Positions 8,501-64,000 of a stretch of DNA of 64,000 bases are shown here, piece after piece. Position numbers and translations under genes: made by a program. Source of the DNA: Adineta vaga (taxonomy: Eukaryota; Animalia; Rotifera); NCBI GenBank assembly GCA_021613535.1, contig CP075497.1:4960001-5024000 (forward strand). Reading direction: 5' to 3'. Under the pieces are notes generated by a model, which did not search any database, was not told the DNA's origin, and saw only the letters and a list, made by a program, of their open reading frames with translations. Numbering within the stretch: the stretch's first letter is position 1; each line of letters opens with the position of its first letter.

Positions 8501-9131
8501 TTTTTCAACTATCGAATGTTCATAAATATGCTTTTGAAAAAAACGTTCATTCTTGCATAAAATTCGAGTTTACTAACTCATATTTTATGAGAAAATGATC
8601 GATTTTTCGAATCAAATAATAATTTAAAAAGTAATTATATTCAGTTATTGATCTTAAATAAGATTAGTATGTATCAACATGCAATGAAATCGTGCAGAGA
8701 CGTTTCTGTACTAAAAAATAAAGCAATTGCAAAAGAAATTTCTTAAAATCAATTTAATTTCAATACGTGCAGAGTGACTAATAATTATAATTTATTGTTT
8801 AGTAATAATTCTTTATCAAACTCGTTTAGCTAATCAATCGTTTTCTCACTAACTATGTTTACTTGTTATTGACATTCCAAAGAATGAAAAATAATCGGAG
8901 AAACGATCAATCGGAAATAAAGAAAATAGATCGAAGTGTTTTCTTTTTTAAAGAAAAAGTCGATTTCAAGTTCGTTCACACGCTATTAACTTATAGATAG
9001 AATCTAACCTTTGACATTTTCAATTCTTCCATCGAATGAAATACTGTTCTCTTTGTTTTGCTGTAAAATAAAATATTAAAAACTACATTATGTTAAAATA
9101 GATATTAGTACTATACTTGTTCAAAGAACAT
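5526..9131 (-). CDS. SETDB1: SETDB1-like H3K9 methyltransferase, copy A (Tudor-MBD-preSET-split SET-postSET)
   Basis: MBD-like YRTPCHRTLYSLDDIEKYLFRT; pre-SET CCTC/CAC/IYECNSKCSC..CSNR; SET KGWGLRTL, YFNHSCDPN, ELTWHY; post-SET CFCGSKNCRGRL. ATG at 9131 inferred by chaining in-frame exons (MFFEQ|QNKENS..|ANFNND..|EKQSDT). Confidence 0.9.
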
Positions 9132-9458
9132 ATTATGTTCTTTAACAATTCAAAACAAAGACAATACCAAAACTAAAAGAATTCGTCTTTATGTATCTAA
9201 AAACAAAGCTTAAATTTAATATTCGATTGAACAAAAAAAAGAAGAAGTAAGAATGTTGAATTAATTTAACTTTTATCGTTTCCTATTTTTACTATAATAA
9301 TAACAAAATGTATCACGAAAAAGACAAAAACACAAAATGAAATGTTCAACAAATATGAAAGAAAGTATCACGGTTAATCTCGTAGACAAATAAAATATCA
9401 GACAATTAGCAAACTGAACAAAAAAAAGAGAGAGAGAAAAAGCAAAAACAAAAGTCGA

Positions 9459-12319
9459 TTATAACAAGCGACCACGACAATTTGACGCTTGACAATGACA
9501 ATCAATATGAACTCCAGGCATACAACCGACTGTATAATTGTAATCCCAACATATTTCTAATGATTTCAAAAGTTGAAAATAGAGAAAAAAAACATATGAA
9601 TTTACCTTCACCAGCTCGAATAGTTCGACAAGCAAAAAGAGCAATAATTGGAAATCGAATATCATGTGAATTAATAAATACCTACAAAACGAAAAAGAAA
9701 ATCGATTTTCTGAAAAGAAATAGAAGCTCATTTGATAGTGATTACATTTTGAATATGAACATTGGGTTTACATGAATGATTGTAAAATCTACTGATCGAA
9801 CCATAATGTTTAGCATCGAGTATTAAACATGATTCTTCATCTTCGTTGTCACTATCTTCGTCTTCATCATCATTGGAACTATCACTTGATAACCGAACAC
9901 AACGTTTTGCAGGAATTGATATTCGTTCTATAATTTATGAAAATTATCGTTTCATTCTATCGATCAGATCATCAGTTGAATGCATGAACTTCTTACCATC
10001 TGATGTTCTCATATAATTCAGACAATTTTTCATTGATTTCTTTCGTTTTTTCCTCCCAGTTGTATGCCCATGGCTTCTATGATCTAATATAGCCAAATAT
10101 TTGAAATCACGTTTTCGTGCCATCGTTTCCGTAATTAATTCACCCACATATGCATTTAAAAAACTATTCCAAGATATATTTCATTTCTAATTTTTCGATT
10201 TCATTCATCTTACCTTCCATGTGGTATATCATGAAGAGCACGTATCGCCCAACCTTTATTATATGTATGAAATAATTGTATTTGTTGATATAAACTATTT
10301 TGTACGAGACGATTTGTACATTGTTTTGTATGACATGAACATTGAGAATTACATTCATAGATTCCACTCCATATAGGTACTTTTAAACGTTGATGAATAT
10401 ATGCGAAACGTGAAATCATTTGTTCATCGGTAAGATTTTGTTTCTGCCACGATAAGATCTGTTCGTTTTTATATAATTTAGCTTGTTCGAATGTTTTAAG
10501 CCAACAAGAACATTTTAATCGATTATGACAACTTTATCAGAGAAACAAGTCCAGAAATTGTCTTCATTTTCTATATTGAACTTACTTATCTGTGCATGAA
10601 CAACATGTTATTGTTGTTAGATCATTTTCAAAGCTTAATTTTGAACGAGTTTCTGTTCCATACATAAATGTATCGGGAAGATCAAGATTATTTTCATTAA
10701 AAACAGATATTTTCACATGTTCTTTTCCTTGTGATAGATCTTGTTTGAGAACATATTTTGAATTATATTCGACGAATGAATTCAAACGTGTTGTACGATC
10801 ATCAATAAAGAATTTAATTGTTAATTTTGAATTCGTTTCAAATAAATAATTTTCAACTTCATCTAAAGTTAAAAGTGATCGACCGCATGGTGAACGATAC
10901 AAATAATTCACACGAGATACTGTTTTATGTGTCGATGGTTTCTTGCTGTAATAACCTTTTGCATAACGATCAATATATAAATATCTCCAACCATATCTAA
11001 TCACAGTCAAAGTTAGAAGAAAGGAAACGATTCAACGAAAATAATACGAACGAAAATGGTAATGTATATGGATTTTGTAGGATTTGATTGGGATTGAAAT
11101 TTTCTTCTATAGTTAAGACACAATATGGTGAACATTGATGAGGTTGATAAACATTCGAGCAAAATGACTGAATTAATGATGTTGATGATAGTGAAGCTAA
11201 AATTATTTCTGTTTTTACAAAATTTTCTCTTCTTTTTTCGAAATTTAGAATAGATCACTTCTTTGAAATGTACATGGAACTTACATGATACTATTTCGTT
11301 CGATGTTTGTTTAGGTTGTAGAATCATTGGACTTGCTAATTCAACTGGTGACATGATAATATCATCGATTAATATCGATTGTTGATGCATCCAAATTTCT
11401 GTTTGTGCTTGTCTTTCATAAAATTTTAATTTCATAATTGAACAATCGATTTCAATGATTTGAGCATGATGATAATTTTCGTCGAACTTTTTCACTCGAA
11501 CATAATCATGTAATTGATATCGTTTTTTATTTAATTTTTGATGAAAAAGAATCTCTTCAAGATCTTTTCGTATGGATTTTGATTCGATCGAACGAGAATT
11601 TCGTTCAAAATCTTGACATAAACATAAATGTATTCGATCATTGTTTGTTGTATAAACTGCAGTGCCATCATCCAATAAAATTAAATGACGAGAATGATTG
11701 TAAATTGAAGGACTTTCATCAATGAAACCTAGAGAAAATTTCGTTTTCATGAATGAGGTATACATAACTCGACATTGATGAGGCATAGAAACATGTTCAA
11801 TGTTACAGTGAATTGATAAATATAAATGACGTTTTGGTATTGAATAAAAATAATTTAAATGTGAAATCTAATCAGTAGAAATTCATTCAAAATCAAAGAT
11901 AAGTGTTCATATCTTACAGTTATATTTTGTTGTTGTTCAAGATTAAAGACGGATGCAATAAGATGAACATCCATGATTCGATTTTCATAAATCAGTAGAA
12001 GATTAGTTTGTTTTTCTAAAGTATTTGGTAATATACCCAATAATGATAGTGAAGTATTTGTCTAAAGAATAGAAAGATATTGATTTGTTATACGAAATAT
12101 ATGTGACTAACATCAGATAATGTCGATGTTGATGTATTAGATTCGATTATTAAACAATCACTATGTGAACTTTCATTATCATCATCGATAATGATTGCAT
12201 CTTTCGATAGATTTGTAAAATTTTCTTTGTTTTTCTTCAAATTAGAAAATAAAATAAAAATAGAAAGATTTAATTATACATACTTTATTTGATTCATATG
12301 TTGTTCTTGTTGACGGCAT
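9459..12319 (-). CDS. SETDB1: SETDB1-like H3K9 methyltransferase, copy B
   Basis: Tudor-like VRVKKFDENYHHAQII; MBD-like YRSPCGRSLLTLDEVENYLFET; GIYECNSQCSC..CTNR; KGWAIRAL; FYNHSCKPN; EICWDYNY; CHCQASNCRGRLL. Start MPSTRTTYESNK|gtatgt. Confidence 0.9.
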
Positions 12320-16626: not shown

Positions 16627-17358
16627 TTAACGTCGTTGTAAACTTATGTTAGGTAAGATTTGTTCTGATAATGTTCGATCATCAAATGCTTCATTTAATT
16701 CACCATATTTTGATAGAATATGATTTGGATTGATAGCTTCTTGCATTGAATCAGTTTTCGGTTGTTTCATTCCAAGAAAAAATCCTAAAGATGCAAGAAA
16801 CGATACATTACCACATGCTACAATAGCTAATATATATGCCCAACGAATTTGACAAGTATCAAGATTAAAATCATTGACATTCGAACCACATACAGTTCGA
16901 ATTGTATCATGATCGAAGCCGGACGGATAAACAATAAGAGCAATTAATAAACAAATTGAACAAATGATTTGAATCAATGAACAAATAAAATAAACAAGTC
17001 GAGCACGTACAAATAAGAAGAGTGTAAATAATGCTAAACAAATCAGAATAAGCAAAGCAGAAAAACCAACAAAAAATGTTGCGACAGCAAATGGTGCACT
17101 AAGAATTGTATTGAAATTCATCCATGTTCCTTGACAATCAAATTCATAATCATTGATAGTACTTATACAATAAGAATATAAACCAAAATGACCGGCTCGT
17201 GGACTTGCTATTGTATCACCAATCCATTGAGGTTGAACAAAAATAAATATATTTAAAATAGCAAAACAACCGGTCAGAAATATCCAAACAAAACCAATGA
17301 TTCTTGATGTCCATTTAAATGATGAATTTTTCTGTGTTGCTATTGTTGTCTTCCGCAT
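16627..17358 (-). CDS. LHFPL/TMHS-family tetraspan membrane protein (LHFPL3/4/5-like), intronless CDS
   Basis: Four hydrophobic segments; family motifs QPQWIGDT, GHFGLYSYC, YPSGFD..IRTVCG, CQIRWAYILAI. Confidence 0.88.
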   Translation of the reverse strand: MRKTTIATQKNSSFKWTSRIIGFVWIFLTGCFAILNIFIFVQPQWIGDTIASPRAGHFGLYSYCISTINDYEFDCQGTWMNFNTILSAPFAVATFFVGFSALLILICLALFTLFLFVRARLVYFICSLIQIICSICLLIALIVYPSGFDHDTIRTVCGSNVNDFNLDTCQIRWAYILAIVACGNVSFLASLGFFLGMKQPKTDSMQEAINPNHILSKYGELNEAFDDRTLSEQILPNISLQRR

Positions 17359-24018: not shown

Positions 24019-25232
24019 ATGGATGGTGGACATTTAACAATTGAAAATGTCACACAATTATTACATCAACATACATTTCCTGCATCTGTTGAAGCTGCAT
24101 TACTTGCTATACGTGAATGTTCAATGTTTACACGTCAAGATTTATCAATGTTAGCAAATCAATTCATATTTTGTCATTCATCATCAACTTCCAATACAAA
24201 TTCAACTCAAAAAATTTGGTCTAAAACATTGAATAACATTCAAGAACTTCATACATTAGATTTAATTCGACAGTTTCTGGAAAATCAATCCGATTCATCA
24301 GCTGCTAATCGTGTCTTTGATATGATCTTTTTGGATATTTTATCCGATAAAGATCATCCATTATTTACACTCTATTATAATTCATTCTTGAAATTTCTTT
24401 CATTAGTCATTTCATTTGAATCGAAAACTGCGTTAACAATCATTGCACGATGGTTTTTAACATTATCCAAAGCAACAACAGATACATTTATAACAAAAAT
24501 AATTGAACATATTATACGTGATCATATTGCATTGGCAATAACAAAATCAGTGAATAATCTTTGTATCATATCACCATTATTTACATTATGTTTCATCAAT
24601 CAAACGTGTATATTATTAGATAGTGAAACTTTTCATATTGATACAAAAGTAATTCAAACATTGATAGAATTATTAACTTTTGGATTGACAAATTCCACAA
24701 ATTCATTAGTTCTTACATTACAACAGGAATTTCTTGCAGAAAGTAAAGAGATATTTATTCAGGAATGAAGTTGATTTTTGACGTTTTTTTTTGTCTCATA
24801 ATAGATGATTCATCTTTATTCAATTTTGTTCCATCAATCGTTCGTTTAGATATTTTATTTCCAATGCGTCATTCAATTGAATCAACATCATTACGATTAC
24901 AATTCGATCATTTTCATACATCCATTCTATCCTTTCTATTCTCCATGGTTACTAATAATTCTTATGAGAATCAAGTTTTTCAAAAACATCTTTTTCCTTT
25001 GAATTATTTCGAACAAATACCTGTGACTATTCAAGATTCTACTGAACATGACAAATTAATCAATGAATGTATTCAACGTTATTTACAAATCTTTGCCATT
25101 TGTCGAACATCTTCATTACCATTGGTACAATTATCCATTAATGAGCTAGGAAAATCTTTCCCTTTACTTACACGTGACAAATTATTTGATATTCTAAAAG
25201 AAAAAGAAGAACATATTCATGTTTCGAAATAG
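24019..25232 (+). CDS. INTS15: Integrator complex subunit 15 (C7orf26-like)
   Basis: QFIF..LNNIQELHTLDLIRQF..FLKFLSLVIS..ISPLFTLCFI parallels the recalled C7orf26 pattern (EFVF..LNSLQELQLLEIMCNYF..LGKLVSMAV..SPRFCCQFI); 2 exons. Confidence 0.7.
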
Positions 25233-31562: not shown

Positions 31563-34500
31563 TTATCGTCGACGTGTTTTGGATTTTGCTTTGGAACGAT
31601 TGATTGCATCAAGGAACTCGTTAGATTTCTTGTCGTTGGACGATTTTGCCGGTGATACTCCGCACATTGAACATTTGCACGATCGAATACGAACAATTTC
31701 TGCTGTTCGTTGTACAGTTGCTCCTGTTGTATTATCACGACAATCAACATTAATAGATTCTGTATAAGTTGAATCCGGTGCACAACAGAAACATTCTTTA
31801 TCAGCCACCGATCCACTGATAGGATCAAGTTCTTCGTATGACGGACAGAAGCCACCACATGAGTCTTGTTGAATTTCTTGTTGTGATATACATTCACCGA
31901 TTGTTACACGCGCAGCAGTCTTTCGCTTTGGTTCACATTGACCCGAAGAAGCTATTAAAAACAAATTCCAAACGAAAACAACCAATGATTACTGAAAAAC
32001 AGGCAAATCTTCTTACATGATGGGGGCGATGTATTGTTTGAAGATGGTAGAGTATATGTTCTTGGCGTCGTTACAGACACTTCCGGTGTTGGTGTTGCTG
32101 GTTCTACACAAGCAATAATCTCGACTGTAACATCTTTTGGTGCTTGACTTTCTGTTGTATGTATAAGACTGATATGAACAGCATTCACTTTCGTACTGAA
32201 ATCCACATTAATTCGTGGACTGTCTTCCAATTTTGAAGTCAACTGTAATGGACCCTTGTCTGCTGGTACAGCTCTGATCGGTTTATCATCTTTGTCCAAA
32301 AACATAACACGAATCTGATCCACATTACTTGTTTTCGGCAAACGAATCGATCGCACGATTGCGGGAGCAACCAATGGAAAAATAATAATGTATCCCTTAT
32401 CAGAAGATGGGAACGAAACACCTTTCGATCCAGGATTGATATCAGTCGGATTATAAGCGCCACTCGGTTTGACAAAGAAACGTGGAGCTGCTGGACTATT
32501 CTCACTAACCGCATCTTCAGGTATAAGAGAAACTTCTTCCCCACAACTTCTCGACGGACTTGTACTCTGTCTTGGAGTAGCACTTGTACCTGGATATGAT
32601 TGACCCAATGTAGATTCTTGCTGAGCAGGTGTTGAGCCTTGTGGTCCGGATGTAGATCCATCTTTGCCAGGTGTTGAACCTTGTGGTCCCGATGTTGATC
32701 CATCTTGACCGCGTGTTGAACCGTCTTGTCCTGTAGTTGATCCTGATTGACCAGGTGTTGAGCCTTGTGGTCCTGATGTAGAACCATCTTGTCCTTGTGT
32801 TGATCCTGATTGACCAGGTGTTGAACCTTGTGGTCCTGATGTTGATCCATCTTGACTGCGTGTTGAGCCTTGTGGTCCCGATGTTGATCCATCTTGACCG
32901 CGTGTTGAACCGTCTTGTCCTTGTGTTGATCCATCTTGACCACGTGTTGAGCCTTGTGGTCCCGATGTTGATCCTGATTGACCAGATGTTGAACCTTGTG
33001 GTCCTAACGTAGAACCGTCTTGACTGCGTGTTGAGCCTTGTGGTCCCGATGTTGATCCATCTTGACCGCGTGTTGAACCGTCTTGTCCTTGTGTTGATCC
33101 ATCTTGACCGCGTGTTGAGCCTTGTGGTCCCGATGTTGATCCATCTTGACCGCGTGTTGAACCGTCTTGTCCTTGTGTTGATCCATCTTGACCACGTGTT
33201 GAGCCTTGTGGTCCCGATGTTGATCCTGATTGACCAGATGTTGAACCTTGTGGTCCTAACGTAGAACCGTCTTGACTGCGTGTTGAGCCTTGTGGTCCCG
33301 ATGTTGATCCATCTTGACCGCGTGTTGAACCGTCTTGTCCTTGTGTTGATCCATCTTGACCGCGTGTTGAGCCTTGTGGTCCCGATGTTGATCCATCTTG
33401 ACCGCGTGTTGAACCGTCTTGTCCTTGTGTTGATCCATCTTGACCACGTGTTGAGCCTTGTGGTCCCGATGTTGATCCTGATTGACCAGATGTTGAACCT
33501 TGTGGTCCTGACGTAGAACCGTCTTGTCCTGGAGTTGATCCTGATTGACCGGGTGTTGAGCCTTGTGGTCCCGATGTTGATGCATCTTGTCCTGGTGTTG
33601 ATCCTGATTGACCAGATGTTGAACCTTGTGGTCCCGATGTTGATCCTGATTGACCAGGTGTTGATCCTTGTGGTCCCGATGTAGAACCGTCTTGTCCTGG
33701 AGTTGATCCTGATTGACCGGGTGTTGAGCCTTGTGGTCCCGATGTTGATGCATCTTGTCCTGGTGTTGATCCTGATTGACCAGATGTTGAACCTTGTGGT
33801 CCCGATGTTGATCCTGATTGACCAGATGTTGAACCTTGTGGTCCTGACGTAGAACCGTCTTGTCCTGGAGTTGATCCTGATTGACCGGGTGTTGAGCCTT
33901 GTGGTCCCGATGTTGATGCATCTTGTCCTGGTGTTGATCCTGATTGACCAGATGTTGAACCTTGTGGTCCCGATGTTGATCCTGATTGACCAGGTGTTGA
34001 ACCTTGTGGTCCTGATGTGGAATCGTCTTGTCCTGTAGTTGATCCTGATTGACCAGGTGTTGAGCCTTGTGATCCCGATGTCGATCCTGATTGACCGGGT
34101 GTTGATCCATCTTGTCCTGGTGTTGAGCCTTGTGGTCCTGAGGTAGATCCATCTTTGCCAGGTGTTGAACCTTGTGGTCCCGATGTTGATCCATCTTGTC
34201 CTTGTGTAGATCCTTGTGGTCCGGATGTAGATCCATCTTTGTCAGGTGTTGAACCTTGTGGTCCCGATGTTGATCCTGATTGACCGGGTGTTGAACCTTG
34301 TGGTCCTGATGTTGATCCATCTTGACTGCGTGTTGAGCCTTGTGGTCCCGATGTTGATCCATCTTGACCGCGTGTTGAACCGTCTTGTCCTTGTGTTGAT
34401 CCATCTTGACCACGTGTTGAGCCTTGTGGTCCCGATGTTGATCCTGATTGACCAGATGTTGAACCTTGTGGTCCTAACGTAGAACCGTCTTGACTGCGTG

Positions 34501-37500
34501 TTGAGCCTTGTGGTCCCGATGTTGATCCATCTTGACCGCGTGTTGAACCGTCTTGTCCTTGTGTTGATCCATCTTGACCGCGTGTTGAGCCTTGTGGTCC
34601 CGATGTTGATCCATCTTGACCGCGTGTTGAACCGTCTTGTCCTTGTGTTGATCCATCTTGACCACGTGTTGAGCCTTGTGGTCCCGATGTTGATCCTGAT
34701 TGACCAGATGTTGAACCTTGTGGTCCTAACGTAGAACCGTCTTGACTGCGTGTTGAGCCTTGTGGTCCCGATGTTGATCCATCTTGACCGCGTGTTGAAC
34801 CGTCTTGTCCTTGTGTTGATCCATCTTGACCGCGTGTTGAGCCTTGTGGTCCCGATGTTGATCCATCTTGACCGCGTGTTGAACCGTCTTGTCCTTGTGT
34901 TGATCCATCTTGACCACGTGTTGAGCCTTGTGGTCCCGATGTTGATCCTGATTGACCAGATGTTGAACCTTGTGGTCCTGACGTAGAACCGTCTTGTCCT
35001 GGAGTTGATCCTGATTGACCGGGTGTTGAGCCTTGTGGTCCCGATGTTGATGCATCTTGTCCTGGTGTTGATCCTGATTGACCAGATGTTGAACCTTGTG
35101 GTCCCGATGTTGATCCTGATTGACCAGGTGTCGATCCTTGTGGTCCTGATGTGGAACCATCTTTTCCTGGTGTTGAGCCTGATTGACCAGGTGTCGATCC
35201 TTGTGGTCCTGATGTTGAGCCATCTTGTCCTGGTGTTGAGCCTGATTGACCAGCTGTCGATCCTTGTGGTCCAGATGTTGATCCTGATTGACCAGATGTT
35301 GAACCTTGTGGTCCTGACGTAGAACCGTCTTGTCCTGGAGTTGATCCTGATTGACCGGGTGTTGAGCCTTGTGGTCCCGATGTTGATGCATCTTGTCCTG
35401 GTGTTGATCCTGATTGACCAGATGTTGAACCTTGTGGTCCCGATGTTGATCCTGATTGACCAGGTGTTGAACCTTGTGGTCCTGATGTGGAATCGTCTTG
35501 TCCTGTAGTTGATCCTGATTGACCAGGTGTTGAGCCTTGTGATCCCGATGTCGATCCTGATTGACCGGGTGTTGATCCATCTTGTCCTGGTGTTGAGCCT
35601 TGTGGTCCTGAGGTAGATCCATCTTTGCCAGGTGTTGAACCTTGTGGTCCCGATGTTGATCCATCTTGTCCTTGTGTAGATCCTTGTGGTCCGGATGTAG
35701 ATCCATCTTTGTCAGGTGTTGAACCTTGTGGTCCCGATGTTGATCCTGATTGACCGGGTGTTGAACCTTGTGGTCCTGATGTTGATCCATCTTGACTGCG
35801 TGTTGAGCCTTGTGGTCCCGATGTTGATCCTGATTGACCAGATGTTGAACCTTGTGGTCCTGATGTTGATCCGGATTGACCAGGTGTTGAGCCTTGTGGT
35901 CCTGATGTAGAACCATCTTGTCCTTGTGTTGATCCTGATTGACCAGGTGTCGATCCTTGTGGTCCCGATGTAGAACCGTCTTGTCCCGGAGTTGATCCTG
36001 ATTGACCAGGTGTTGAGCCTTGTGATCCCGATGTCGATCCTGATTGAACGGGTGTTGATCCATCTTGTCCTCGTGTTGAGCCTTGTGGTCCTGAGGTAGA
36101 TCCATCTTTGCCAGGTGTTGAACCTTGTGGTCCCGATGTTGATCCTGATTGACCAGATGTTGAACCTTGTGGTCCCGATGTTGATCCTGATTGACCGGGT
36201 GTTGAACCTTGTGGTCCTGATGTAGAACCGTCTTGTCCTTGTGTTGATCCTGATTGACCAGGTGTTAAGCCTTGTGGTCCCGATGTTGATCCTGATTGAC
36301 CAGGTGTTGATCCATCTTGTCCTCGTGTTGAGCCATCTTGTCCTGTAGTTGATCCTGATTGACCAGGTGTAGAAGCTTGTGGTCCTGATGTTGATCCTGA
36401 TTGACCAGGTGTTGAGCCTTGTGGTCCCGATGTTGATGCATCTTGTCCTGGTGTTGATCCTGATTGACCAGATGTTGAACCTTGTGGTCCCGATGTTGAT
36501 CCTGATTGACCAGATGTTGAACCTTGTGGTCCTGATGTAGAACCGTCTTGTCCTGGAGTTGATCCTGATTGACCAGGTGTTGAGCCTTGTGATCCCGATG
36601 TCGATCCTGATTGACCGGGTGTTGATCCATCTTGTCCTCGTGTTGAGCCTTGTGGTCCTGAGGTAGATCCATCTTTGCCAGGTGTTGAACCTTTTGGTCC
36701 CGATGTTGATCCTGATTGACCGGGTGTTGAATCTTGTGGTCCTGATGTAGAACCGTCTTGTCCTTGTGTTGATCCTGATTGACCGGGTGTTGAACCTTGT
36801 GGTCCTGGTGTTGATCCATCTTGTCCTTGTGTGGATCCTTGTGGTCCGGATGTAGATCCATCTTTGCCCGGTGTTGAACCTTGTGGTCCCGATGTTGATC
36901 CTGATTGACCAGATGTTGAGCCTTGTGGTCCCGATGTTGATCCTGATTGACCGGGTGTTGATCCATCTTGTCCTCGTGTTGAGCCATCTTGTCCTTGTGT
37001 TGATCCTGATTGACCAGGTGTCGATCCTTGTGGTCCCGATGTTGATCCTGATTGACCGGGTGTTGATCCATCTTGTCCTTGTGTTGATCCTGATTGATCA
37101 GGTGTTGAGCCTTGTGGTCCTGATGTTGATCCATCTTGACCGCGTGTTGAACCATCTTGTCCTTGTGTTGATCCTGATTGACCAGATGTTGAACCTTGTG
37201 GTCCTGATGTTGATCCTGATTGACCAGGTGTTGAGCCTTGTGGTCCTGATGTAGAACCATCTTGTCCTTGTGTTGATCCTGATTGACCAGGTGTCGATCC
37301 TTGTGGTCCCGATGTAGAACCGTCTTGTCCTGGAGTTGATCCTGATTGACCAGGTGTTGAGCCTTGTGATCCCGATGTCGATCCTGATTGACCGGGTGTT
37401 GATCCATCTTGTCCTCGTGTTGAGCCTTGTGGTCCTGAGGTAGATCCATCTTGTCCTTGTGTGGATCCTTGTGGTCCGGATGTAGATCCATCTTTGCCAG

Positions 37501-40500
37501 GTGTTGATCCGAGTGGTCCCGATGTTGATCCTGATTGACCGGGTGTTGAACCTTGTGGTCCTGGTGTTGATCCATCTTGTCCTTGTGTGGATCCTTGTGG
37601 TCCGGATGTAGATCCATCTTTGCCCGGTGTTGAACCTTGTGGTCCCGATGTTGATCCTGATTGACCAGATGTTGAGCCTTGTGGTCCCGATGTTGATCCT
37701 GATTGACCGGGTGTTGATCCATCTTGTCCTCGTGTTGAGCCATCTTGTCCTTGTGTTGATCCTGATTGACCAGGTGTCGATCCTTGTGGTCCCGATGTAG
37801 AGCCGTCTTGTCCTTGTGTTGATCCTGATTGACCAGGTGTCGATCCTTGTGGTCCCGATGTTGATCCTGATTGACCGGGTGTTGATCCATCTTGTCCTTG
37901 TGTTGATCCTGATTGACCAGGTGTTGAGCCTTGTGGTCCTGATGTTGATCCATCTTGACCGCGTGTTGAACCATCTTGTCCTTGTGTTGATCCTGATTGA
38001 CCAGATGTTGAGCCTTGTGGTCCTAATGTTGATCCATCTTGACCGCGTGTTGAACCATCTTGTCCTTGTGTTGATCCTGATTGACCAGATGTTGAGCCTT
38101 GTGGTCCCGATGTTGATCCTGATTGACCGGGTGTTGATCCATCTTGTCCTCGTGTTGAGCCATCTTGTCCTTGTGTTGATCCTGATTGACCAGGTGTTGA
38201 GCCTTGTGGTCCCGATGTTGATGCATCTTGTCCTGGTGTTGATCCTGATTGACCAGATGTTGAACCTTGTGGTCCCGATGTTGATCCTGATTGACCAGAT
38301 GTTGAACCTTGTGGTCCTGATGTTGATCCTGATTCACCAGGTGTTGAGCCTTGTGGTCCTGATGTAGAACCATCTTGTCCTTGTGTTGATCCTGATTGAC
38401 CAGGTGTCGATCCTTGTGGTCCTGATGTGGAACCATCTTGTCCTGGTGTTGAGCCTGATTGACCAGCTGTCGATCCTTGTGGTCCTGATGTGGAACCATC
38501 TTGGCCTGGTGTTGATCCTTGTGGTCCGGATGTAGATCCATCTTTGCCCGGTGTTGAACCTTGTGGTCCCGATGTTGATCCTGATTGACCAGATGTTGAG
38601 CCTTGTGGTCCCGATGTTGATCCTGATTGACCGGGTGTTGATCCATCTTGTCCTCGTGTTGAGCCATCTTGTCCTTGTGTTGATCCTGATTGACCAGGTG
38701 TCGATCCTTGTGGTCCCGATGTAGAGCCGTCTTGTCCTTGTGTTGATCCTGATTGACCAGGTGTCGATCCTTGTGGTCCCGATGTTGATCCTGATTGACC
38801 GGGTGTTGATCCATCTTGTCCTTGTGTTGATCCTGATTGACCAGGTGTTGAGCCTTGTGGTCCTGATGTTGATCCATCTTGACCGCGTGTTGAACCATCT
38901 TGTCCTTGTGTTGATCCTGATTGACCAGATGTTGAGCCTTGTGGTCCTGATGTTGATCCATCTTGACCGCGTGTTGAACCATCTTGTCCTTGTGTTGATC
39001 CTGATTGACCAGGTGTTGAACCTTGTGGTCCTGATGTAGAACCGTCTTGTCCTTGTGTTGATCCTGATTGACCAGGTGTTGAGCCTTGTGGTCCAGGTGT
39101 TGATCCCTGTGAAACTGAGGTAGATCCATTTTGGTTTGGTGTTGAACCTTGTTGGTGATGGGTGGTTCTTGGCTGTCGAGAGGTGGAACCTTCTTCACCG
39201 GTTGTTGTTTTTGGGATAGTTGTAGTGCTACTAGGAGTGCCGGTGGTGAAGCCTACTAAGAGAAATAGGTTTATATTTGGTTGTAGTTGTGTATTGGTAT
39301 ATGTGCATAAGTTTTAATGTTAGTACTCACGGGGACCTGTGGTTGATATTTCGCCTTCGCCACATGCTCGGACAGATAAAGTAACTTTCTTCGGTGTTTT
39401 GTTATCCTTCGTTTTTATTATCGTCAAAACAAAACTGTCGATTTTATCGTTCGGAAAATCTGCTGGATTCAAAGCTTCAGGTGCTCCAATGATAGGTCGG
39501 ATTTGTTCGCCGTTTACTGTAGTAAGATGTATTTCGATTTTTTGGACGTTGTTTGATTTTAGTTTGACGTCACGTATAATGGCACCTCCTTCAGGGAAAT
39601 CAACTACAAGAACTGGGTGTGGTACTCTGAAATTGACACCTTTTTTTATTAAATCTTTTGTATTGAGTTGATCATTAGGATTTTGAAGGATTGCATCGTC
39701 CGCCACGAGATTCTCAATCAATTCGATTTCATTACATGATGGTTTTGGAGTGAGTGGGTTACCAGTTGATAATGTTCCTTTGACGGGTTTAGTATGTTTA
39801 GGACGTTTCGTACTACGAATATTTTTTGTTGTTTTACCTCTGGTTGTTACGCCTCTTGACCACTACCCGTAGTACCTTGAGTTGTTATATCTGTTATTGA
39901 TGTACCTGGTTTCACTTTAGTTGTTTGAGGTTCACCAGGTGCTTGCGTAATATCAATTCCACCAGAAGTAGTTAATCCATCACCGTTTCTTGTTGTTCCA
40001 TTAACGATAGATTCAGTCGTACCTATAGATAATAAAATAATATTTTTAGATAAATAATCACAGTTCGAAGTAGTAAATGAATCGAATCGATTAGTAGTAG
40101 TTCGAAGGATATTATAATTTACCGATAGAATCAGTTGATTTTTTGGTGCCTGGTGGTGCAGTCGTTGATGCTGATCCATTCGATGGATGTTTAGTTCCAA
40201 CTGGTTGTTTAGTGGGTTTGTCTGTGCCATGGGGGCATGAAGAGTCTGGTTGTTTGACACATTTTAATGGCTCTCGTCTGTTTTGATTTCTATCATAGAA
40301 TTTATTGTGTTTACAAACACAACCTAACAACGAGAATTTTTCTAATGGTTTGAAAGGTTAAGAAAAAAAACTTACCGGCAAGACATTGTCGTTTACAGAT
40401 AGTATTTGATCCTTGTCTATGATCCGATCAGAACATGAATTTAAACATGTGGCCGGACATTCCTCATAGACACTTTCAGCACCACATCGAGGATATATGG

Positions 40501-46635: not shown

Positions 46636-48262
46636 ATGATCTTTTCACCCATTTCAACAATGAATACGGCACCATTAATCCCACCACGTGTGCAATCACC
46701 ATCATTTATTCGTAAAAGAAATTTACCAACTCCTCCTCCATCTTTTGCTGATGTCAACGATTCTTCGTCATGTTCCTCTTCTTCTTCCTCTGTTTCTTCT
46801 GCTTATTCGACAACAACTACTACTAGCAGCACGACTCTTAGTGACAATAATAATACAGTAGCATCGTGTGATTTACTAAATATAATAACGGATGCACGTT
46901 TTCGTCCAGTTTTTCAAGCAATTGATGAAATAAAACGACGTAAATGTCGACCCGATCTTGAACGTATACTTAAATATGTAGGAAAAAGATGTACAGGAAA
47001 TAATGTATCATATCAACGAGAAGAAATTCTTGTTATACTCGATGATTTACTTAAACTTGGCCTTATCACGAAAGTATTTCACAAAGGTGGTTTTACAATA
47101 CGAATAAAAAATGAAAAATGTGCAAAACTAATTGAAAAAATGAATGTATGTTATAATCAAAAGACACCAACTGCAACACCGATGAGTGCACATGAAGCTA
47201 TGGCTGTTGCTGCGGCTGCTGGAACGATTAATTTAAATAATCAACCATGGCCAATACCACAGCAATATGTGTTAAATTCAAATGAAAAGAATATTAATGA
47301 TCATCACCACCACTATCATCCTCACTCTCACCCTTATATACGCGAAACACCATCTCCAGAATTTGCTGTATTTAAAACGGGTAAGAAAGACAAAATGTTT
47401 CTTTTTTTCTTTCTTTCTTTCTTTTGTAATGTTCAATGTATAGTGCTTACTTTCTATGACTCGATTACATAATTGAGTCCCACTCATCATATGATAGACG
47501 AATAAGAACAAAAAGGAGAAAAAAAACGAGTGAGATCTTACTTGTTGATACTCTCAACTTACTTATCCCATAGGCTATATTTTGTATTTCTCAACACATC
47601 GTTTCTTATCTATATCTTTGATAGCAATTGTATAAAGAGAGAAATTGAATATTTTAGAACCATCATCATCATCTGTATATTTATCACTTGATCAAAACAA
47701 TAATTCTGGAAAACTACAAATGATTAAAGAAAATACATTAATAAATGGATCAAACCTATTATCTACATCAACTTCTTTCTCCTCGTCTTCTTCAAGTACA
47801 AAATCGTCAAAAAAACGAACTCGAAGTCAAACAGTATCATCACATGACAGTAAAAAATCACGTTCAACAAAAACATCTGATTCTATTCTATCGTCGTCTT
47901 CTTCTTCTTCTTCTTCTGTTCTTCCTCTTGTGAATAATAACAATAATACTAATGATGAACATTTATTTCGTAAACCATTGATAACCAATAATAATTTACC
48001 ACGAATAACTATTGAACAAATTCTTGGATTACGCGGTGATATTCCTGACGTGCACAACTGGTCAACAAGTCAATTAAATGAATTTTTTCATCAACAAGGC
48101 TATGAATATGCCGCTATTGTATTGAATAAATATCACATTAATGGAAATAAATTATATGAATTAAAACGCGAACAAGTATTTCGAATGTCGACGTTAAAAA
48201 TTGGTAAAGCGTTAAAATTATGGAATGTTATTGAACAGATACAACGAAAATGTTGGTCTTAA
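46636..48262 (+). CDS. SAMD1: SAMD1/atherin-like protein (N-terminal CpG-binding winged helix plus C-terminal SAM domain)
   Basis: VFQAIDEIKRRKCRPDLERILKYV..LITKVFHKGGFTIR resembles the recalled SAMD1 winged helix (ILDTIDSLRSRKARPDLERI..VLRVSYKGSISYR); SAM domain VHNWSTSQLNEFF..INGNKL..LKIGKALKL. Exons 46636-47380 and 47658-48262. Confidence 0.82.
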
Positions 48263-50745: not shown

Positions 50746-57349
<6,604 letters not shown>

Positions 57350-57668
57350 CGTACAGACGGAGTAGCTCAAACGAGATGGAAAATATTCATCAACATATCT
57401 AGAAAAGATTTAAATTGCATAATTATATGAAATAAAATCATTCCTTTTTCTTTCAAATGAAAAAATGTAATGTAATGTGAGTGACGATATACTTACTTCT
57501 TATTGTTGAATGTTCTATCCAATCAAGACATTTTATTCGCATGATTTTCATTGGATCAATCTGTTGCGATTGTATGTTCGTCTCTGTATTTGTATCTGTA
57601 CTGTATATATTAATCTATTCTATTCTTTTCCATCGTTTCTTATTATTTATCACGAAAAAAAAGCAGTT

Positions 57669-58535
57669 ATGGAATACAAAGGAATGAATCGAATATTGCA
57701 TTTTATTGTTGGTATCTTTTTATTCCTTATTGTGCTTTTTCTCTATCTTGGTCTTCGTCCAATTTTTATTCTTGCTAGTCTTGCTCTCGGCATATTTCTT
57801 GTTGATTATTCAATTTTTCCATTTATATATCTTTATCAAGCATTTAAACAATGGTTACCTCTTTTATTTGAATTAAATATTTTAAATGGAGTATTGATTT
57901 CCACACGAATACTCCATTTTTCCAAATTTTCATCATTTATATTTATAACTATTTGTCTTGTACGAAGTCTTACTGTGATTTATTGTCGTCATTTACCTAT
58001 CAATGATGAACATCGTTTATATATTGAAAATAAAATTCAATTTTTAACAAGATTATTTTTAAAAGAATTCGAAAAACTTTCCAAACGTTTTACGAAATTA
58101 TTCTCTCAAAATGATGATCATGAATTGGAAAAATTTCAATTAGATCAAATCAAATCATTGGACAATGTTCCTTCTGAACATGATGAAACAATTCAACGTT
58201 TTCAAAAAATTGCTCACGAACTTTCATCACCAATGATCTCAAATATTGATTGTTCAAATAGTTCAACACCACCCATTCGTCGTCATCATCAACGTATTCT
58301 TCAACAAAGTGAACTCGAACCATTACCTCGAACACCAATTACACCAGCACATACAAATTCATCCAAAGAAAAAATTCTACATTCAACTATGAATGGGTCA
58401 TACACAGGACCTATGACAAGAAATCGTATCAAAACAGGTGGTTCATCCTCAATCACAACATCTCCATTGAAGAGCAAGGCACCAACGGAAATGACTTTTC
58501 TTATTTGTAAAAAAGATGAAATTACTTCTAAATAA
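57669..58535 (+). CDS. Hypothetical multi-pass membrane protein with polar C-terminal tail
   Basis: Intronless ORF (open from 57510) with several N-terminal hydrophobic segments; transcribed divergently from GCN2; start uncertain. Confidence 0.6.
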   Translation: MEYKGMNRILHFIVGIFLFLIVLFLYLGLRPIFILASLALGIFLVDYSIFPFIYLYQAFKQWLPLLFELNILNGVLISTRILHFSKFSSFIFITICLVRSLTVIYCRHLPINDEHRLYIENKIQFLTRLFLKEFEKLSKRFTKLFSQNDDHELEKFQLDQIKSLDNVPSEHDETIQRFQKIAHELSSPMISNIDCSNSSTPPIRRHHQRILQQSELEPLPRTPITPAHTNSSKEKILHSTMNGSYTGPMTRNRIKTGGSSSITTSPLKSKAPTEMTFLICKKDEITSK

Positions 58536-59146: not shown

Positions 59147-60494
59147 ATGCGTTCGTCATCACTTTTAAAAGCTGTCGTTTCGGTTTGTAAAATCTTATGT
59201 TAGCTATGAACGTGTTTAATAATATTGTTTTTTATTTAGACTTTAAATCGTACATGTCAACGTTATCAAAATACAGCTAGTCAAGCAGACCTAGTATTAC
59301 ACACTGATCCTGTTCTTCCAATCATTGATTTTTCTTCATTTGCAAGTAAAAATGAAGCAAACAATTATTCTCGTGATATAATTGAAAAATTAGCTAATGC
59401 TTGTGAACATGTTGGATTCTTTTATGCGATTGGTATGTAGTGTTGTCATTCATGTTTCAACTAAATTCAACAATCATTTAGGTCATGGAGTATCAAATGA
59501 ATTACTTCTTCGAACATTATCTATCACACGTCAATTATTTGATCTAGATTCAAAAATAAAAAATCAATATGCTGCTCGTTTATTTACGAATTCATCAAAT
59601 AGAGATCAGAAATATGGTGGATTTGGTCGTGGTTATCAAAGTCTTGGTGAAAATGTTACGAATACAAAACGTGATCGACATGAAGGCTTTGATCTGTATC
59701 GTGAATTAGAAAAAAATCATCCACTTCGTTTACAATTTGATAATACAAATTTAACTGATAAGAATTTACCTGATTATCGTGATTTGGCTGTAGGACAGAA
59801 TCCATGGCCAAAGGAATTACCATTATTTAGAGAAATCTTAACAGAATACACTAAAGCTATGTTACAAGCAGGTGAACGTGTCATGCGTGGCATTGCTCTT
59901 TCCTTGGATTTACCTATGAATTATTTTGAAACAACGTTCAATGATTCATTTTGGGTAAAGAGAAAACACAATTTGTAATTGATTTCGTTCTAAACATCTT
60001 GTTATATTCTTTAGGTTATTCGTTGTATTCGTTATCCATCTGTTGAATCAAGTGAAAGCAAATCACCTGAATATGGTCATGGTTGTGGCGAACATTCTGA
60101 TTATGGTTGGCTGACATTTGTTAATCAAGATCTTGATTCACGTAATTGTCTTCATGTTCGAACAAGTGACACATCAAAAGCGACATATGTATCAGCTGAT
60201 CCTATCGTTGTTGAAGAGCAAATTGCATTAACATGTAATATTGGTGATATTGTTGCATTTATTACAAATAATAAATATCGTTCAACACGTCATTGTGTAG
60301 TTAGTCCTGTGAAACCAGCTCGATCACGTATATCAACTCCGTTCTTTTTCGAACCAAATCTTGATGTTAAATTACGCATTAATGAAACTGCTTCGGAATG
60401 TTATTATGGTGAATATTTAATCAATAAAGTTCGAAATAACTTCAATTATCACAATGATGAACCAATTGATCATGCGTATATACATATTCTATAA
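59147..60494 (+). CDS. 2-oxoglutarate/Fe(II) dioxygenase of the IPNS/DIOX_N type, DIN11-like
   Basis: LPIIDFS..ACEHVGFFYAIG|HGVS; RGYQSLGENVT..DRHEGFD; NPWP; FW|VIRCIRYP; CGEHSDYGWLTFVNQD (HxD); NIGD..RSTRHCV (distal H); RISTPFF (RxS). Three GT-AG introns. Confidence 0.9.
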
Positions 60495-61212
60495 AGAACT
60501 TTCTGTTGTTTTCTTTTGTACACACAATCTTTGAATGATAAATATAAACTGATGGTCATAATAACCAGAAAATATGTAATAAGAAAAGTTTCTTCCTAAT
60601 AAAACCTATGAAAAGTAATTGTTCAGAATTCTTTCTTAATCTTCGATACTTTCATCTGTTGTTTTGAAGGGAAAAAAAACCAGTTAACATATTTAGTTTT
60701 ATGTTCTATTCTAAACATAGTCATATATACCATTTATCTCTACATAAAGTATCAATAAATCTGCAAAAAATTACCCAAAAACAAAATGGCATCTGTATAT
60801 TTATAACTGTAAACTACGAACGACGTGTGTGCTTTTATTTTTTTTTCTTTCATAGGATTATTGGTTGGTTACATGTACTTCGTGCATAAGTTAGTTCCAA
60901 TAGTCTATACGTACATATTTCAGACCAAGGTTTCTCCAGGGTAAGATGTCAATATCTAAGCTAGAAAGAATGTGAAATATTATTTATTAGAACAATAGAA
61001 AACGATTATTGTTGTGTCATTGTCAATTCCGTAGATATTAATTATATAAACCTACATTCTTTATCAGTAGAAATCTAATCGAATAGAACGAAAGAAACAA
61101 ACAAAATAGTCCAGAAGTCTATAGAGAGTGGAGCTCCATTCTTTTTCAGAATCTGTTCTAACATAGTATTTTCCTCAACTATACCATAATAAAATCATCT
61201 TTTCAGAGCAAC

Positions 61213-61748
61213 ATGGCACGTGCGAAACAATGTTGTTTCAGTTTTTGTAAAGAATTCAAAGCGTATGTAGTCGAATATCGGATATTTTTCTTTTTGTACA
61301 GCATTTTGTTTTCTTTGACGTTAGATTTGCTACTCGTGGTAATGTTTTGGATTTAGCAATTGGTATCGTTATTGGTACTGCATTTACGAATGTTATTCAA
61401 TCACTCGTTGATGATGTTATAACACCACCCTTGGGTTTAGTTTTGGGTGGTGTTGATTTTGTTAATTTAACGATTAAAATGAAAAATTTCATTTATAAAG
61501 ATCAACCACCAGTTGTTATTCGTTATGGCAAATTTATTCAATCAATTATCACATTATCTATTGTAGCAATGGCATTATTTTGCGTCCTTAAAGGCATTAA
61601 TCAGTTGTACAAGATGACTTCGAAAAAGAAAGACAAGAATAAAACTGAAACAATAATTGAAGTGAACGAAGAAGTGAAACTTTTACGAGAAATTCGAGAT
61701 TTATTAGCTCGACAGTTACAAATGGAACCGATGGCTATTCGATTATAA
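61213..61748 (+). CDS. mscL: Large-conductance mechanosensitive channel MscL (bacterial type) with one spliceosomal intron (61263-61324)
   Basis: KEFKA|FATRGNVLDLAIGIVIGTAFTNVIQSLVDDVITPPLGLVLGGVDF..YGKFIQSII..LLREIRDLL matches the MscL S1-TM1-TM2-C-helix layout. Confidence 0.95.
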
Positions 61749-62717
61749 TTTAATTTTCTTCTAAGGTATTTTTCTTCATAAAACAAATGGAATAAATATA
61801 TGTCGCATTAATATTCAAGAAAATTTATTGCAAAGACAACGAACTCATTTTGATGCAACTGAAAGTATCTGAATGAATTAGAATAAATTAGCAAAATGAT
61901 ATTATTGGCAAGAACATTGTCAATAATGATGCTTCACTAGCTGCTGATTAGAGAAAATTACACATCTAACAAAACAATTTCTAAGCCTGAAGTTATTGGT
62001 AATTATTGTAAATAAATACAGCGAAATTTCTTGGATAGTCAAGTTAAGGATGTGAATATATTTTACGCATTTCAAAAGAAAAACCGCATATTTGTTCGAC
62101 TATATCTGTATTCAACATATTTTATCAATGAAACAAATCTACTAGATATAATTGTCTACTTGACTTTACTATTCAGTTGGTGTTTTAGATTTGGTATAAT
62201 GAAAAATATTTTTATTACTCTGCTTTACTTTCTTTACCTTCATAGAGTACATGTCTCTTCAGACGAATAATAAACTAGATGTCTGAATTGCAATAGAATA
62301 AAATAGTCGTAAAGCGTTAAGTATTTCAAGTTTCATCGATAATCATCACCACAAACTACCTTTCAAAACTTATTGGACTGCATAGTTTTTGACGAAATTT
62401 CAGTACTACATTCAAATTAAGTCTAACCAACGCTGTCACAATGAAGTAAAGAATAATAAATCTTCAGTCTTTGTTTATTACTATTTTACAAACCTTTACT
62501 ATAGGTTTAGGAGGAAAATAATTCTCTGAAGGTCTATATCCCGCCAATAAATTCAAAAAAGACTTATAAAATAACAATAAATGTAGATTAAAAGTTTACA
62601 ATGTTTCACTAACATGTTTTAATGTTTGAGGGTGGGTGTGAGTATGTTTAATTCTTCTGTAAACGACAGTTTTAACGCGTTTCTTTTCATTAATTTTTAC
62701 TCCTATGCTAGATAAAT

Positions 62718-63250
62718 ATGAAACGTACAAAACAATGTTGTTTTAGTTTTTGTGGAACACTCAAAGAGTACGTATTCAATCCTTAAATGTTTTTTTTGTA
62801 CGTTAGCTGTATTTTTATTTTATTAGACTTGCTACTTGAGGTAATATCTTGAATTCAGCGATAAGTTTTGTTCTTGGCACTGCATTTTCTAATGTTATTC
62901 AATCACTTGTTGATGATATTATGACACCACCCTTAGGTTTAGTTTTGGGTGGTGTTGATTTCATTAATTTAACAATTAAAATGCCAAATTTCATTTATAA
63001 AGATCAACCACCAGTTGTTATTCGTTACGGAAGATTTATTCAAGCACTTATTACTCTAGTTATTGGGGGACTGTCACTTTTGGGTATACTCAAGAGTATC
63101 TATAAACTTTATAGAATAGCTTCGGAACAGGAACAAAAATCTGATTGTGAAACAGCAAATGAAGTAAGAGAAGAAGTGAAACTTTTACGAGAAATTCGGG
63201 ATATATTAGCTCGATCATCCCAAATGGAATCAGTGGATATTCAACTATAA
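62718..63250 (+). pseudogene. mscL: Second MscL copy with premature stop codon
   Basis: Same intron position (62768-62826). Spliced frame reads MKRTKQCCFSFCGTLKELAT*GNILNSAISFVLG; TGA at 62837-62839 replaces the Arg of RGN; the remaining frame is open. Confidence 0.8.
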
Positions 63251-63832
63251 CATCTTTTTTGTTCCACGACTTTTTTTTTCCAAAGATTAACTCTCTTTGT
63301 TATATTGCTTAATGTCATAGAAAAAAAAACATTTATTTGTTCGAAAAATGTCCGACGGCAATAGAAGTATATGCGTAGCGAAAGAATAAACGACTTCTAA
63401 ACTGTACAAATATATGATCTGCTAATGAGAAAAAAAGCACTACACACTCAAAAATAACTCGATGAGACCAAAGAGTAAAATAATAGATGAACAAAGAAAA
63501 AAAATTGATGACATGAACAAAATTTGAGTATTCGACAATCATTTTTATAAAAAAAAAAGAGAGAGAAGAAACAAGTAATACAAACGAAGTACACACGTAC
63601 ATATACAAAACGAAAAAGAAACTAACATGAAGTAAAATGTAACAAGAAACAAAAAAGGTAAAAATCGATTAATACGATTTCGACATGAGACGTAAATAAT
63701 CATTAATTATCTTTAACAGATAGATGACGAGATTCATGAGAAAGACGAAACATGCGAATATGAATACACATTGAAAATTGCACGAACTAAATACATATTC
63801 AATATGTTTTCATTGACTTGTTATCTTAGGAT

Positions 63833-64000
63833 TCATTTTTTGACTCGAGAACGAACTTTACGTGCAGGTTTGTCTAAATGATCAATGAATGATATTGTGA
63901 AATTGTAAAATAAAATCTCTTACCTTGTTGAGAACTGTCACTGTCTCGACGCATACCACCGACACCTTGTGCTGCTTGATTAGCTAATTTTGAAGCATAT
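63833..64000 (-). CDS. 3' end of an unidentified gene extending beyond the window
   Basis: ..YASKLANQAAQGVGGMRRDSDSSQQ|gtaag..ttag|DKPARKVRSRVKK* spliced in frame. Confidence 0.55.

Follow-up and report, generated by a model that had tools for sequence, protein, structure and literature searches.

How does a gene for the large-conductance mechanosensitive channel MscL, the textbook example of a channel gated by the lipid bilayer and one that is treated as essentially microbial, come to lie in the chromosome of an animal, and does it still specify a working protein there? The question is raised by a stretch of 64,000 nucleotides (here called the window; G000:C6:4960001-5024000) located at 4.96-5.02 Mb within the six-contig, 100.8-Mb genome of the bdelloid rotifer Adineta vaga, for which a first-pass annotation had proposed that a bacterial MscL was domesticated in an animal genome. 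Our analysis leads us to conclude, with a probability of roughly 0.8, that the segment 61213-61748 of the window is a functional, transcribed A. vaga gene for a full-length MscL, that it is one of seven paralogues and that the family to which it belongs was acquired once, most likely from bacteria. The earlier proposal stands in so far as it described a genuine animal gene that is integrated in the genome of its host, and it has to be amended in that the gene is not single, since it belongs to a set of seven paralogues and to a family that is distributed over the genera Adineta, Rotaria and Didymodactylos.

The gene, which we refer to as copy 1, consists of two exons on the plus strand, and its features and those of its surroundings are listed in Table 1. 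Its predicted spliced product is identical letter for letter to the NCBI hypothetical protein I4U23_028836 of Adineta vaga (157 residues; record P0001), which is composed exactly of the residues of exon 1, one alanine and the residues of exon 2. This stored record was used for all full-length analyses, and the genomic exons were searched separately. Removal of the intron gives an unbroken alignment to bacterial MscL across the junction, with residues 10-147 of P0001 matched to residues 2-132 of the Escherichia coli protein. We infer that the intron is spliced in vivo, since its removal restores the reading frame, since its site is common to all of the paralogues and since the match to the bacterial S1 helix is continuous. 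An alternative acceptor at 61300-61301, within the intron, was discarded as it would add 23 nt and break the frame. The intact MscL open reading frame (ORF) that had been reported from first inspection, with its RGNVLDLAIG and LLREIRDLL stretches, its 62-nt GT-AG intron and a tttcag acceptor 6 nt before the ATG, was found in all of these particulars.

Table 1. Features of the window that bear on MscL copy 1, followed by the tandem copy 2 and the neighbouring genes (positions are those of the window; UTR, untranslated region; TM1 and TM2, first and second transmembrane helices).
Feature	Positions	Strand	Remarks
Conserved upstream non-coding region	60845-61206	+	blastn 67-73% identity to A. ricciae and A. 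steineri; candidate promoter, 5'UTR or 5' intron
Putative 17-nt 5'UTR exon (first-pass annotation)	60924-60940	+	cag, 17 nt, gtaag present in the sequence
3' splice acceptor ttttcag	61200-61206	+	ends 6 nt before ATG; cis acceptor of a 5'UTR intron or spliced-leader trans-splice site
MscL copy 1, exon 1	61213-61262	+	ATG at 61213; 16 codons plus 2 nt; CCFSFC Cys cluster; first half of S1 (KEFK plus 2 nt of Ala); residues 1-16 of P0001
MscL copy 1, intron	61263-61324	+	62 nt, GT-AG (GTATGT...GTTAG), phase 2
MscL copy 1, exon 2	61325-61748	+	424 nt; end of S1, TM1 and gate residues, loop with N-L-T sequon, TM2, charged cluster, C-terminal helix; TAA at 61746-61748
MscL copy 1, 3'UTR	61749-61936	+	188 nt; AATAAA at 61882-61887, AATAAT at 61922-61927; ends at probable polyadenylation site
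MscL copy 2 (I4U23_028837)	62718-63250	+	exon 1 62718-62767; 59-nt intron 62768-62826; exon 2 62827-63250; tblastn
In-frame TGA in copy 2	62837-62839	+	takes the place of the Arg codon in RGN; lies four codons into exon 2; heterozygous
SETDB1-like gene	5526-11783		Pfam Pre-SET/SET/Tudor
LHFPL gene	16627-17355		Pfam
INTS15 gene	24019-24765		Pfam
SAMD1 WH-domain gene	46636-47469		Pfam
GCN2 kinase gene, 5' part	55039-57472	-	tblastx collinearity with annotated RWD/Pkinase/HisRS-like gene of L095 and L096 (loci of the two other Adineta species)
Unknown ORF	57510-58535	+	341 aa, no Pfam match; translated identity of up to 82% and conserved synteny with A. ricciae and A. steineri
2OG-Fe(II) oxygenase gene	59206-60510	+	intron-bearing; Pfam DIOX_N, E 4e-9; orthologues in L095 and L096 annotated DIOX_N and 2OG-FeII_Oxy
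Pbx-type PBC/homeobox gene	63331-64000	-	runs off the window; tblastx match to L095 7751-8459, annotated PBC and Homeodomain

The product of copy 1 is a genuine MscL in its sequence and predicted fold. Exon 2 alone matches the Pfam family MscL (PF01741) with an E value of 4.5e-36 and 124.4 bits, against a cut-off of 27.4, over profile positions 8-122 of 123, and P0001 passes the NCBIfam equivalogs NF001843 (152 bits, cut-off 142) and TIGR00220 (120.9 bits, cut-off 71). A phmmer comparison with the solved E. coli MscL gave an E value of 6e-31, and weaker matches were obtained with the other solved MscLs of actinobacterial (1e-9), staphylococcal (1e-17) and archaeal (2e-8) origin. The AlphaFold2 model, built on an 80-sequence alignment and with a mean confidence (pLDDT) of 76.6, places helices at residues 4-21, 24-56, 85-128 and 132-150 and a hairpin at 66-83, which is the order of elements in MscL (S1, TM1, hairpin, TM2 and C-terminal helix). 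Its top Foldseek matches were the MscL structures 2oar, 4y7k and 6ctd, each with a probability of 1.0 and with low TM-scores of 0.33-0.35 that are expected for a lone extended subunit. The TM1 positions chosen for examination (E. coli R13-G14-N15, D18, L19, A20, G22, V23 and G26) are conserved in the rotifer protein as R21-G22-N23, D26, L27, A28, G30, I31 and G34, so that the gate residues L19, G22, V23 and G26 of the E. coli channel correspond to L27, G30, I31 and G34.

For a gene whose family is typically bacterial and whose closest relatives outside of the bdelloids are bacterial as well, the possibility of bacterial contamination or of an error of assembly has to be weighed, and we consider its probability to be practically negligible. 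The copy 1 coding sequence has a GC content of 0.32 and a GC content at third codon positions (GC3) of 0.23, in keeping with the window as a whole (GC 0.33) and with neighbouring host ORFs (GC3 of 0.14-0.15), whereas the closest bacterial MscL gene has a GC content of 0.51. In all seven A. vaga copies, the conserved codons of S1 are interrupted by a GT-AG intron. The order of genes in the corresponding loci of A. steineri and A. ricciae is that of A. vaga, namely GCN2 on the minus strand, an unknown ORF (~290 aa), a 2-oxoglutarate (2OG)-Fe(II) oxygenase and MscL; a Pbx-type homeobox gene follows MscL in the A. steineri locus, and collinearity with both loci extends from ~55.0 kb of the window to where it ends. 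The neighbours GCN2 and Pbx recur in three independently assembled Adineta species, between which even the non-coding DNA upstream of MscL is conserved, and contigs from an independent DNA sequencing run of 2013 span the whole MscL locus continuously and at even depth. MscL is physically integrated in a bdelloid chromosome beside metazoan genes. In this regard the first-pass annotation, which had pointed to the host-like AT richness of the gene and to SETDB1, LHFPL and SAMD1 on the same contig, was borne out by the base composition and by the Pfam matches of the three genes. Searches of single ORFs of the GCN2 region against Pfam gave no match, the exons being too short, and GCN2 was identified by collinearity.

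A six-frame search of the A. vaga genome detected seven MscL loci, which are arranged as tandem pairs on contigs 2, 3 and 6 and as a single locus on contig 5. All seven carry the intron, which is 51-62 nt long, in phase 2 and at one common site behind the codons for KEFK. Beyond A. vaga, orthologues of copy 1 with 71-82% identity occur in A. ricciae, A. steineri and five Rotaria species, and at least 120 public clusters match at 60% identity or more, every named one of them from Adineta or Rotaria. Many of the unnamed metagenomic ORFs of the bdelloid type either run through the intron or begin just after it. In Didymodactylos carnosus, MscL is specified by one uninterrupted ORF for 177 aa (L009:4045-4578; CAJNOQ010018234.1), which includes the bdelloid cysteine motif and lacks an intron at the site used in the other genera. 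The public model for this gene (P0126) starts at an upstream ATG and introduces an intron, and its annotated N-terminus is probably wrong. The shared intron either arose after Didymodactylos had branched off or was lost in that lineage.

Two other observations touch on the history of the family. A metagenome contig of 1.8 kb (JGI contig Ga0210259_11794641; L094:120-575) contains a bdelloid-type MscL that lacks the shared intron and is nearest to the 'b' copy on A. vaga contig 3; the contig also carries upstream DNA and a second gene, and it might represent a loss of the intron or be derived from a transcript. In addition, the members of the MscL pairs are each other's closest or near-closest relatives by synonymous divergence (dS of 0.47-0.80), and orthologues from other genera split the members of the contig-3 pair into separate old clades. 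These relationships hint at an old tandem duplication with some gene conversion or at a whole-genome duplication.

Where did the family come from? An exhaustive HMMER scan of 1.84 billion representative sequences revealed a distinct step in score, with five bdelloid-type clusters at 152-193 bits and everything else at no more than 120 bits and 52% identity. The nearest outsiders that can be placed are bacterial, at ~45-52% identity. They include proteins whose genes lie beside gyrB and methylmalonyl-CoA mutase (P0123), in a Bacteroidota-type context (P0269) or beside TetR and MarR regulators (P0280), as well as sequences from Neisseria (P0132) and Gracilibacteria (P0141); another relative (P0124) is encoded beside a ZIP transporter gene on an intronless 3.5-kb contig, a setting that fits a bacterial origin without proving it. 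A scan of GTDB found 597 bacterial loci at 39-49% identity, spread over many phyla. No non-bdelloid animal and no eukaryote of any kind was found among the outside relatives of checkable origin, most of the relatives being unnamed. In a maximum-likelihood tree (248 rows, 137 columns, quick search, LG+C20, unrooted), all 29 bdelloid sequences and one metagenomic fragment formed a single clade, with a support of 95 in the approximate likelihood-ratio test (SH-aLRT) and with D. carnosus at its base. Four older paralogue clades within it each hold both Adineta and Rotaria sequences.

We interpret these results to mean that the family most likely stems from one transfer from bacteria into the bdelloid stem, which was followed by duplications and vertical descent. 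The transfer would be ancient, predating the crown group of the bdelloids, because Adineta, Rotaria and Didymodactylos all possess the family. The donor was most likely a bacterium with an MscL of the E. coli type, many Gram-negative phyla being equally near. A slightly older acquisition or a eukaryotic donor is possible at low odds. In particular, MscL occurs patchily in some microbial eukaryotes, and the family might descend vertically from an early eukaryote, with losses in the other animals, or have been taken up from a fungus, an oomycete or a protist. Such a history would be compatible with an unrooted tree that singles out no specific bacterial sister and with the many unnamed metagenomic proteins among the near matches. 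We nevertheless regard it as improbable, since every nearest non-bdelloid match that could be checked is bacterial and none is eukaryotic, the named sequences among the best 120 matches are all bdelloid, and the neighbours shown by the Atlas are 89-100% bacterial. Moreover, E. coli-type MscL matches the protein far better than do the solved MscLs of actinobacteria, staphylococci or archaea, and the gene of the basal D. carnosus has no intron at the site common to Adineta and Rotaria, as would be expected of a prokaryotic source. The horizontal acquisition suggested in the first-pass annotation is upheld to the extent that the bdelloid genes form one clade and that their checkable outside relatives are bacterial, and it falls short of naming a donor or a bacterial sister group.

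The coding sequence of copy 1 is under purifying selection. Pairwise ratios of nonsynonymous to synonymous divergence (dN/dS) among the seven A. vaga copies, estimated for exon 2, range from 0.17 to 0.43, at dS values of 0.5-1.6. Between copy 1 and other contigs of the same species, which might represent alleles or strains, all ten coding differences are synonymous, two of them falling within one leucine codon. With these signs of selection, the host-like base composition, the intron in seven paralogues and an A-tailed contig (described below), copy 1 displays the features of a domesticated gene. Could it nevertheless be a functionless relic in decay, of which any transcription is at most noise? 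Contigs that resemble RNA are of low depth and cover only the 3' part of copy 1, and the adjacent copy 2 has a stop codon in its reference allele, both of which might be expected of a relic. We give very little credence to this explanation, given that the frame of copy 1 is intact, that dN/dS has remained low in spite of considerable synonymous divergence, that none of the allelic differences alters the protein, that its orthologues have been retained at 71% identity or more in seven other species and that all of the gate and structural residues are conserved.

The DNA ahead of the coding sequence is conserved as well. Approximately 360 nt of upstream non-coding DNA are conserved in a three-way alignment of the Adineta species, and within the alignment there are invariant blocks at 60878-60889 (12 nt, ~335 nt before the ATG) and at 61020-61070 that are candidates for promoter or regulatory elements. 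A T-rich tract followed by YAG is found 0-12 nt before the ATG in all seven A. vaga paralogues as well as in the A. ricciae and A. steineri orthologues. Because it is conserved in all of the paralogues and in the orthologues of three Adineta species, the acceptor before the ATG is very probably used in vivo. The first-pass annotation had paired this acceptor with a 17-nt 5'UTR exon. The string it described is present, and its cag and gtaag flanks are kept in A. steineri; they are not conserved in A. ricciae, and no contig of the RNA-like runs lies over 60924-60940. A passage in PMC1925144, which cites Pouchkina-Stantcheva and Tunnacliffe (2005), reports that more than half of the mRNAs of bdelloids receive a leader of 23 nt by trans-splicing. 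Since the leader is so common on bdelloid mRNAs according to that passage, trans-splicing at 61206/61207 is an equally good reading of the acceptor and is at least as likely as the 17-nt exon.

Evidence for transcription comes from sequencing runs that are merely guessed to be RNA. Their contigs on copy 1 span 61473-61936 only, in the 3' part of the gene. One contig (run X1, 61638-61936) ends in eight non-templated A residues, 49 nt after the AATAAA, and this A tail after a polyadenylation signal suggests polyadenylation at 61936.

A number of considerations weigh against our conclusion about copy 1 and should be set against the evidence reviewed so far. The spliced RNA junction by which the first-pass annotation would have had its intron checked did not appear: in the RNA-like runs, no read or contig crosses from exon 1 to exon 2 and no contig spans the intron or the 5' end of the gene. 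One of these runs also holds an intergenic contig (61979-62202) with variants of the alternative haplotype, which reflects either intergenic transcription or a carry-over of DNA and therefore limits the reading of such runs as evidence of expression. The case for splicing, and even for transcription, is therefore in large part comparative, with the one A-tailed contig in addition. With respect to origin, the search did not cover monogonont, seisonid or acanthocephalan genomes, the tree was calculated without the named eukaryotic MscLs (of fungi, oomycetes and others), and neither a bacterial sister group nor a donor could be identified from a quick, unrooted tree of 137 columns. Finally, the channel activity, the oligomeric state and the physiological role of an animal MscL are inferred from membership in the family, and the palmitoylation and glycosylation considered below are read from motifs only.

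Two small features set the bdelloid proteins apart from their bacterial relatives. In all 25 of the bdelloid N-termini that were modelled through exon 1, there are 2-5 cysteines among the 12 residues before EFK, mostly in the arrangement C-C-x-x-F-C, whereas 190 of 196 bacterial sequences have none in that stretch. The loop begins with an N-x-S/T sequon in 116 of the 118 bdelloid-type sequences and in only 4 of the 179 bacterial ones. Both termini of MscL are cytoplasmic and its loop lies outside, and because of this topology the cysteine cluster is a plausible candidate site for S-acylation (palmitoylation) and the N-L-T sequon a plausible candidate for N-glycosylation. Both candidate sites argue for insertion by way of the secretory pathway, and the protein is likely to have the secretory pathway or the plasma membrane as its destination, with its termini in the cytosol.

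Copy 2, which follows copy 1 in tandem, has altered pore residues and an in-frame stop codon in its reference allele. At position 62837 of the DNA run of 2013 (X8), one contig has the T of the TGA and another, of similar depth, has C (77.6 of 143.9 in depth), so that the other allele has CGA (Arg). The public model of copy 2 (P0109) avoids the TGA by means of a later acceptor, at the cost of deleting the start of TM1. In the tree, copy 2 is the sister of copy 1 on a long branch, and the corresponding loci of A. ricciae and A. steineri lack it, for which reason we take it to be a young duplicate of the A. vaga lineage. The dN/dS of 0.43 between copies 1 and 2 is the highest of all the pairs, and the positions equivalent to D18, L19 and G22 of the E. 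coli channel are occupied in copy 2 by Asn, Ser and Ser. An RNA-like contig covers 62975-63132 of copy 2. The G22S mutant of the E. coli channel is a gain-of-function mutant with a low threshold, hydrophilic residues at this position lowering the threshold for gating, and we may speculate that copy 2 specifies a leaky channel that is under relaxed or negative selection.

A possible course of events can be drawn from these observations. The family would have entered the bdelloid lineage once, before Didymodactylos split from Adineta and Rotaria, and would then have taken on the base composition of its host. The phase-2 intron within the S1 codons might have been gained in the stem of Adineta and Rotaria, a splice acceptor might have been added just before the ATG, and repeated duplication would have produced the paralogues. 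The protein has retained all of the parts on which the working of bacterial MscL depends, from the amphipathic S1 helix to the C-terminal bundle helix. It would therefore assemble as a homo-oligomer, as family membership suggests (a solved MscL is a pentamer), and near-lytic tension in the membrane would open a large, non-selective pore through which solutes are released during hypo-osmotic swelling. MscL is gated by tension and has a non-selective conductance of roughly 3 nS. The cysteine cluster and the sequon could be a refitting of the protein for a eukaryotic membrane.

What might such a channel do for a rotifer? Because copy 1 is a member of the MscL family, protection against hypo-osmotic shock would be its most likely role, for which the first-pass annotation had offered the rehydration of a desiccation-tolerant animal as an example. 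A role in rehydration only is weakened by the fact that orthologues of copy 1 have been kept in Rotaria magnacalcarata and R. socialis, which spend their whole lives in fresh water and failed to survive when they were dried experimentally (PMC4632278). General control of volume in fresh water appears at least as likely as a role in rehydration. It is conceivable, and we entertain it only tentatively, that copy 1 specifies a working channel of the MscL type with a job other than rehydration, be it the everyday control of volume in fresh water or an outlet for solutes or proteins in certain cells or in a compartment within the cell. Retention of the gene in the two non-desiccating species speaks for such a job, as do the four older paralogue clades, which predate the split of Adineta from Rotaria and suggest sub-functionalisation; retention in aquatic species is at the same time compatible with an additional role in rehydration. 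In a further scenario, which we think possible although rather doubtful, MscL would have been re-engineered for an animal membrane, with S-acylated cysteines anchoring the tension-sensing S1 and an N-glycan on the loop, and expanded into functionally distinct paralogues serving as safety valves for cell volume. Among them would be the young copy 2, which hydrophilic substitutions of the G22S type at its gate would cause to open at low tension and which a stop codon is now silencing on one haplotype. Should this hold, the re-engineered family would be the first of its kind, a native MscL adapted to animals, and its natural variants could be drawn on for MscL-based tools in animal cells.

Bdelloids commonly carry foreign genes, the sequences discussed here are public and automatically annotated (UniRef names the orthologues 'Large-conductance mechanosensitive channel'), and the function that we assign is a prediction. 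Among the papers of the library that was searched, none was found to deal with MscL in bdelloids, and searches on mechanosensitive channels in bdelloids or in Adineta yielded nothing relevant either. New in the current report are the synteny of three species, the A. vaga-specific duplicate with its heterozygous stop codon, the intronless basal orthologue, the statistics of the cysteine cluster and the sequon, and the caveat posed by the non-desiccating species. A conserved, multi-copy MscL family that is maintained by selection in an animal would imply that gene transfer in nature is able to equip metazoan cells with a force-from-lipid valve. The cysteine cluster and the sequon are testable as adaptations to the biogenesis of eukaryotic membranes, and they might be of interest to groups that use bacterial MscL, expressed in animal cells, as an actuator for mechanical stimuli or ultrasound. 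For the biology of bdelloids, the family is a candidate effector in osmotic stress, and its retention in species that do not survive desiccation warns against linking it to anhydrobiosis only.

Other parts of the window contain features that might deserve attention in their own right. The 2OG-Fe(II) oxygenase gene lies directly upstream of MscL and is syntenic in the three Adineta species. The DIOX_N/2OG-FeII oxygenase family is typical of plants, fungi and bacteria, and this gene may be a second foreign gene beside MscL. Further away, an 8-kb stretch at 32001-40000 has a GC content of 0.45-0.51 and an AT skew down to -0.42, the rest of the window having ~30% GC.

The relationship of the rotifer gene to known systems can be summarized at several levels. 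Compared with the MscL of E. coli (structures 28oa, 9tiu and others), the rotifer protein belongs to the same length class and aligns from end to end, sharing the amphipathic S1 (KEFxxF), the RGN motif, the equivalents of the gate residues, TM2, the charged cluster KKK(D/E) and the C-terminal LL-EIRDLL helix. It differs in that its gene is nuclear and has a spliceosomal intron within the S1 codons, and in that the protein has a 9-residue N-terminal extension with the CCxxFC cluster and, where the loop begins, an N-L-T sequon; its identity to bacterial MscLs is only ~45-52%. In relation to the G22S mutant, copy 2 naturally has Ser at the equivalent position, but it differs by several further substitutions and by the heterozygous stop. 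With the other bdelloid MscLs, copy 1 shares the clade, the position of the intron (except in D. carnosus), the cysteine cluster, the sequon and the acceptor before the ATG. It belongs to the orthologue group designated C6a, with 82% identity to the A. ricciae and 80% to the A. steineri member, and it is followed by a young tandem duplicate in A. vaga only and not in the loci of those two species. Approximately 10% of the genes that bdelloids express are non-metazoan, many of them being ancient, shared among species and equipped with introns (PMC4632278). The MscL family fits this pattern of bdelloid foreign genes in being ancient, shared and furnished with a gained intron, and its locus is internal to the chromosome, among conserved metazoan genes.

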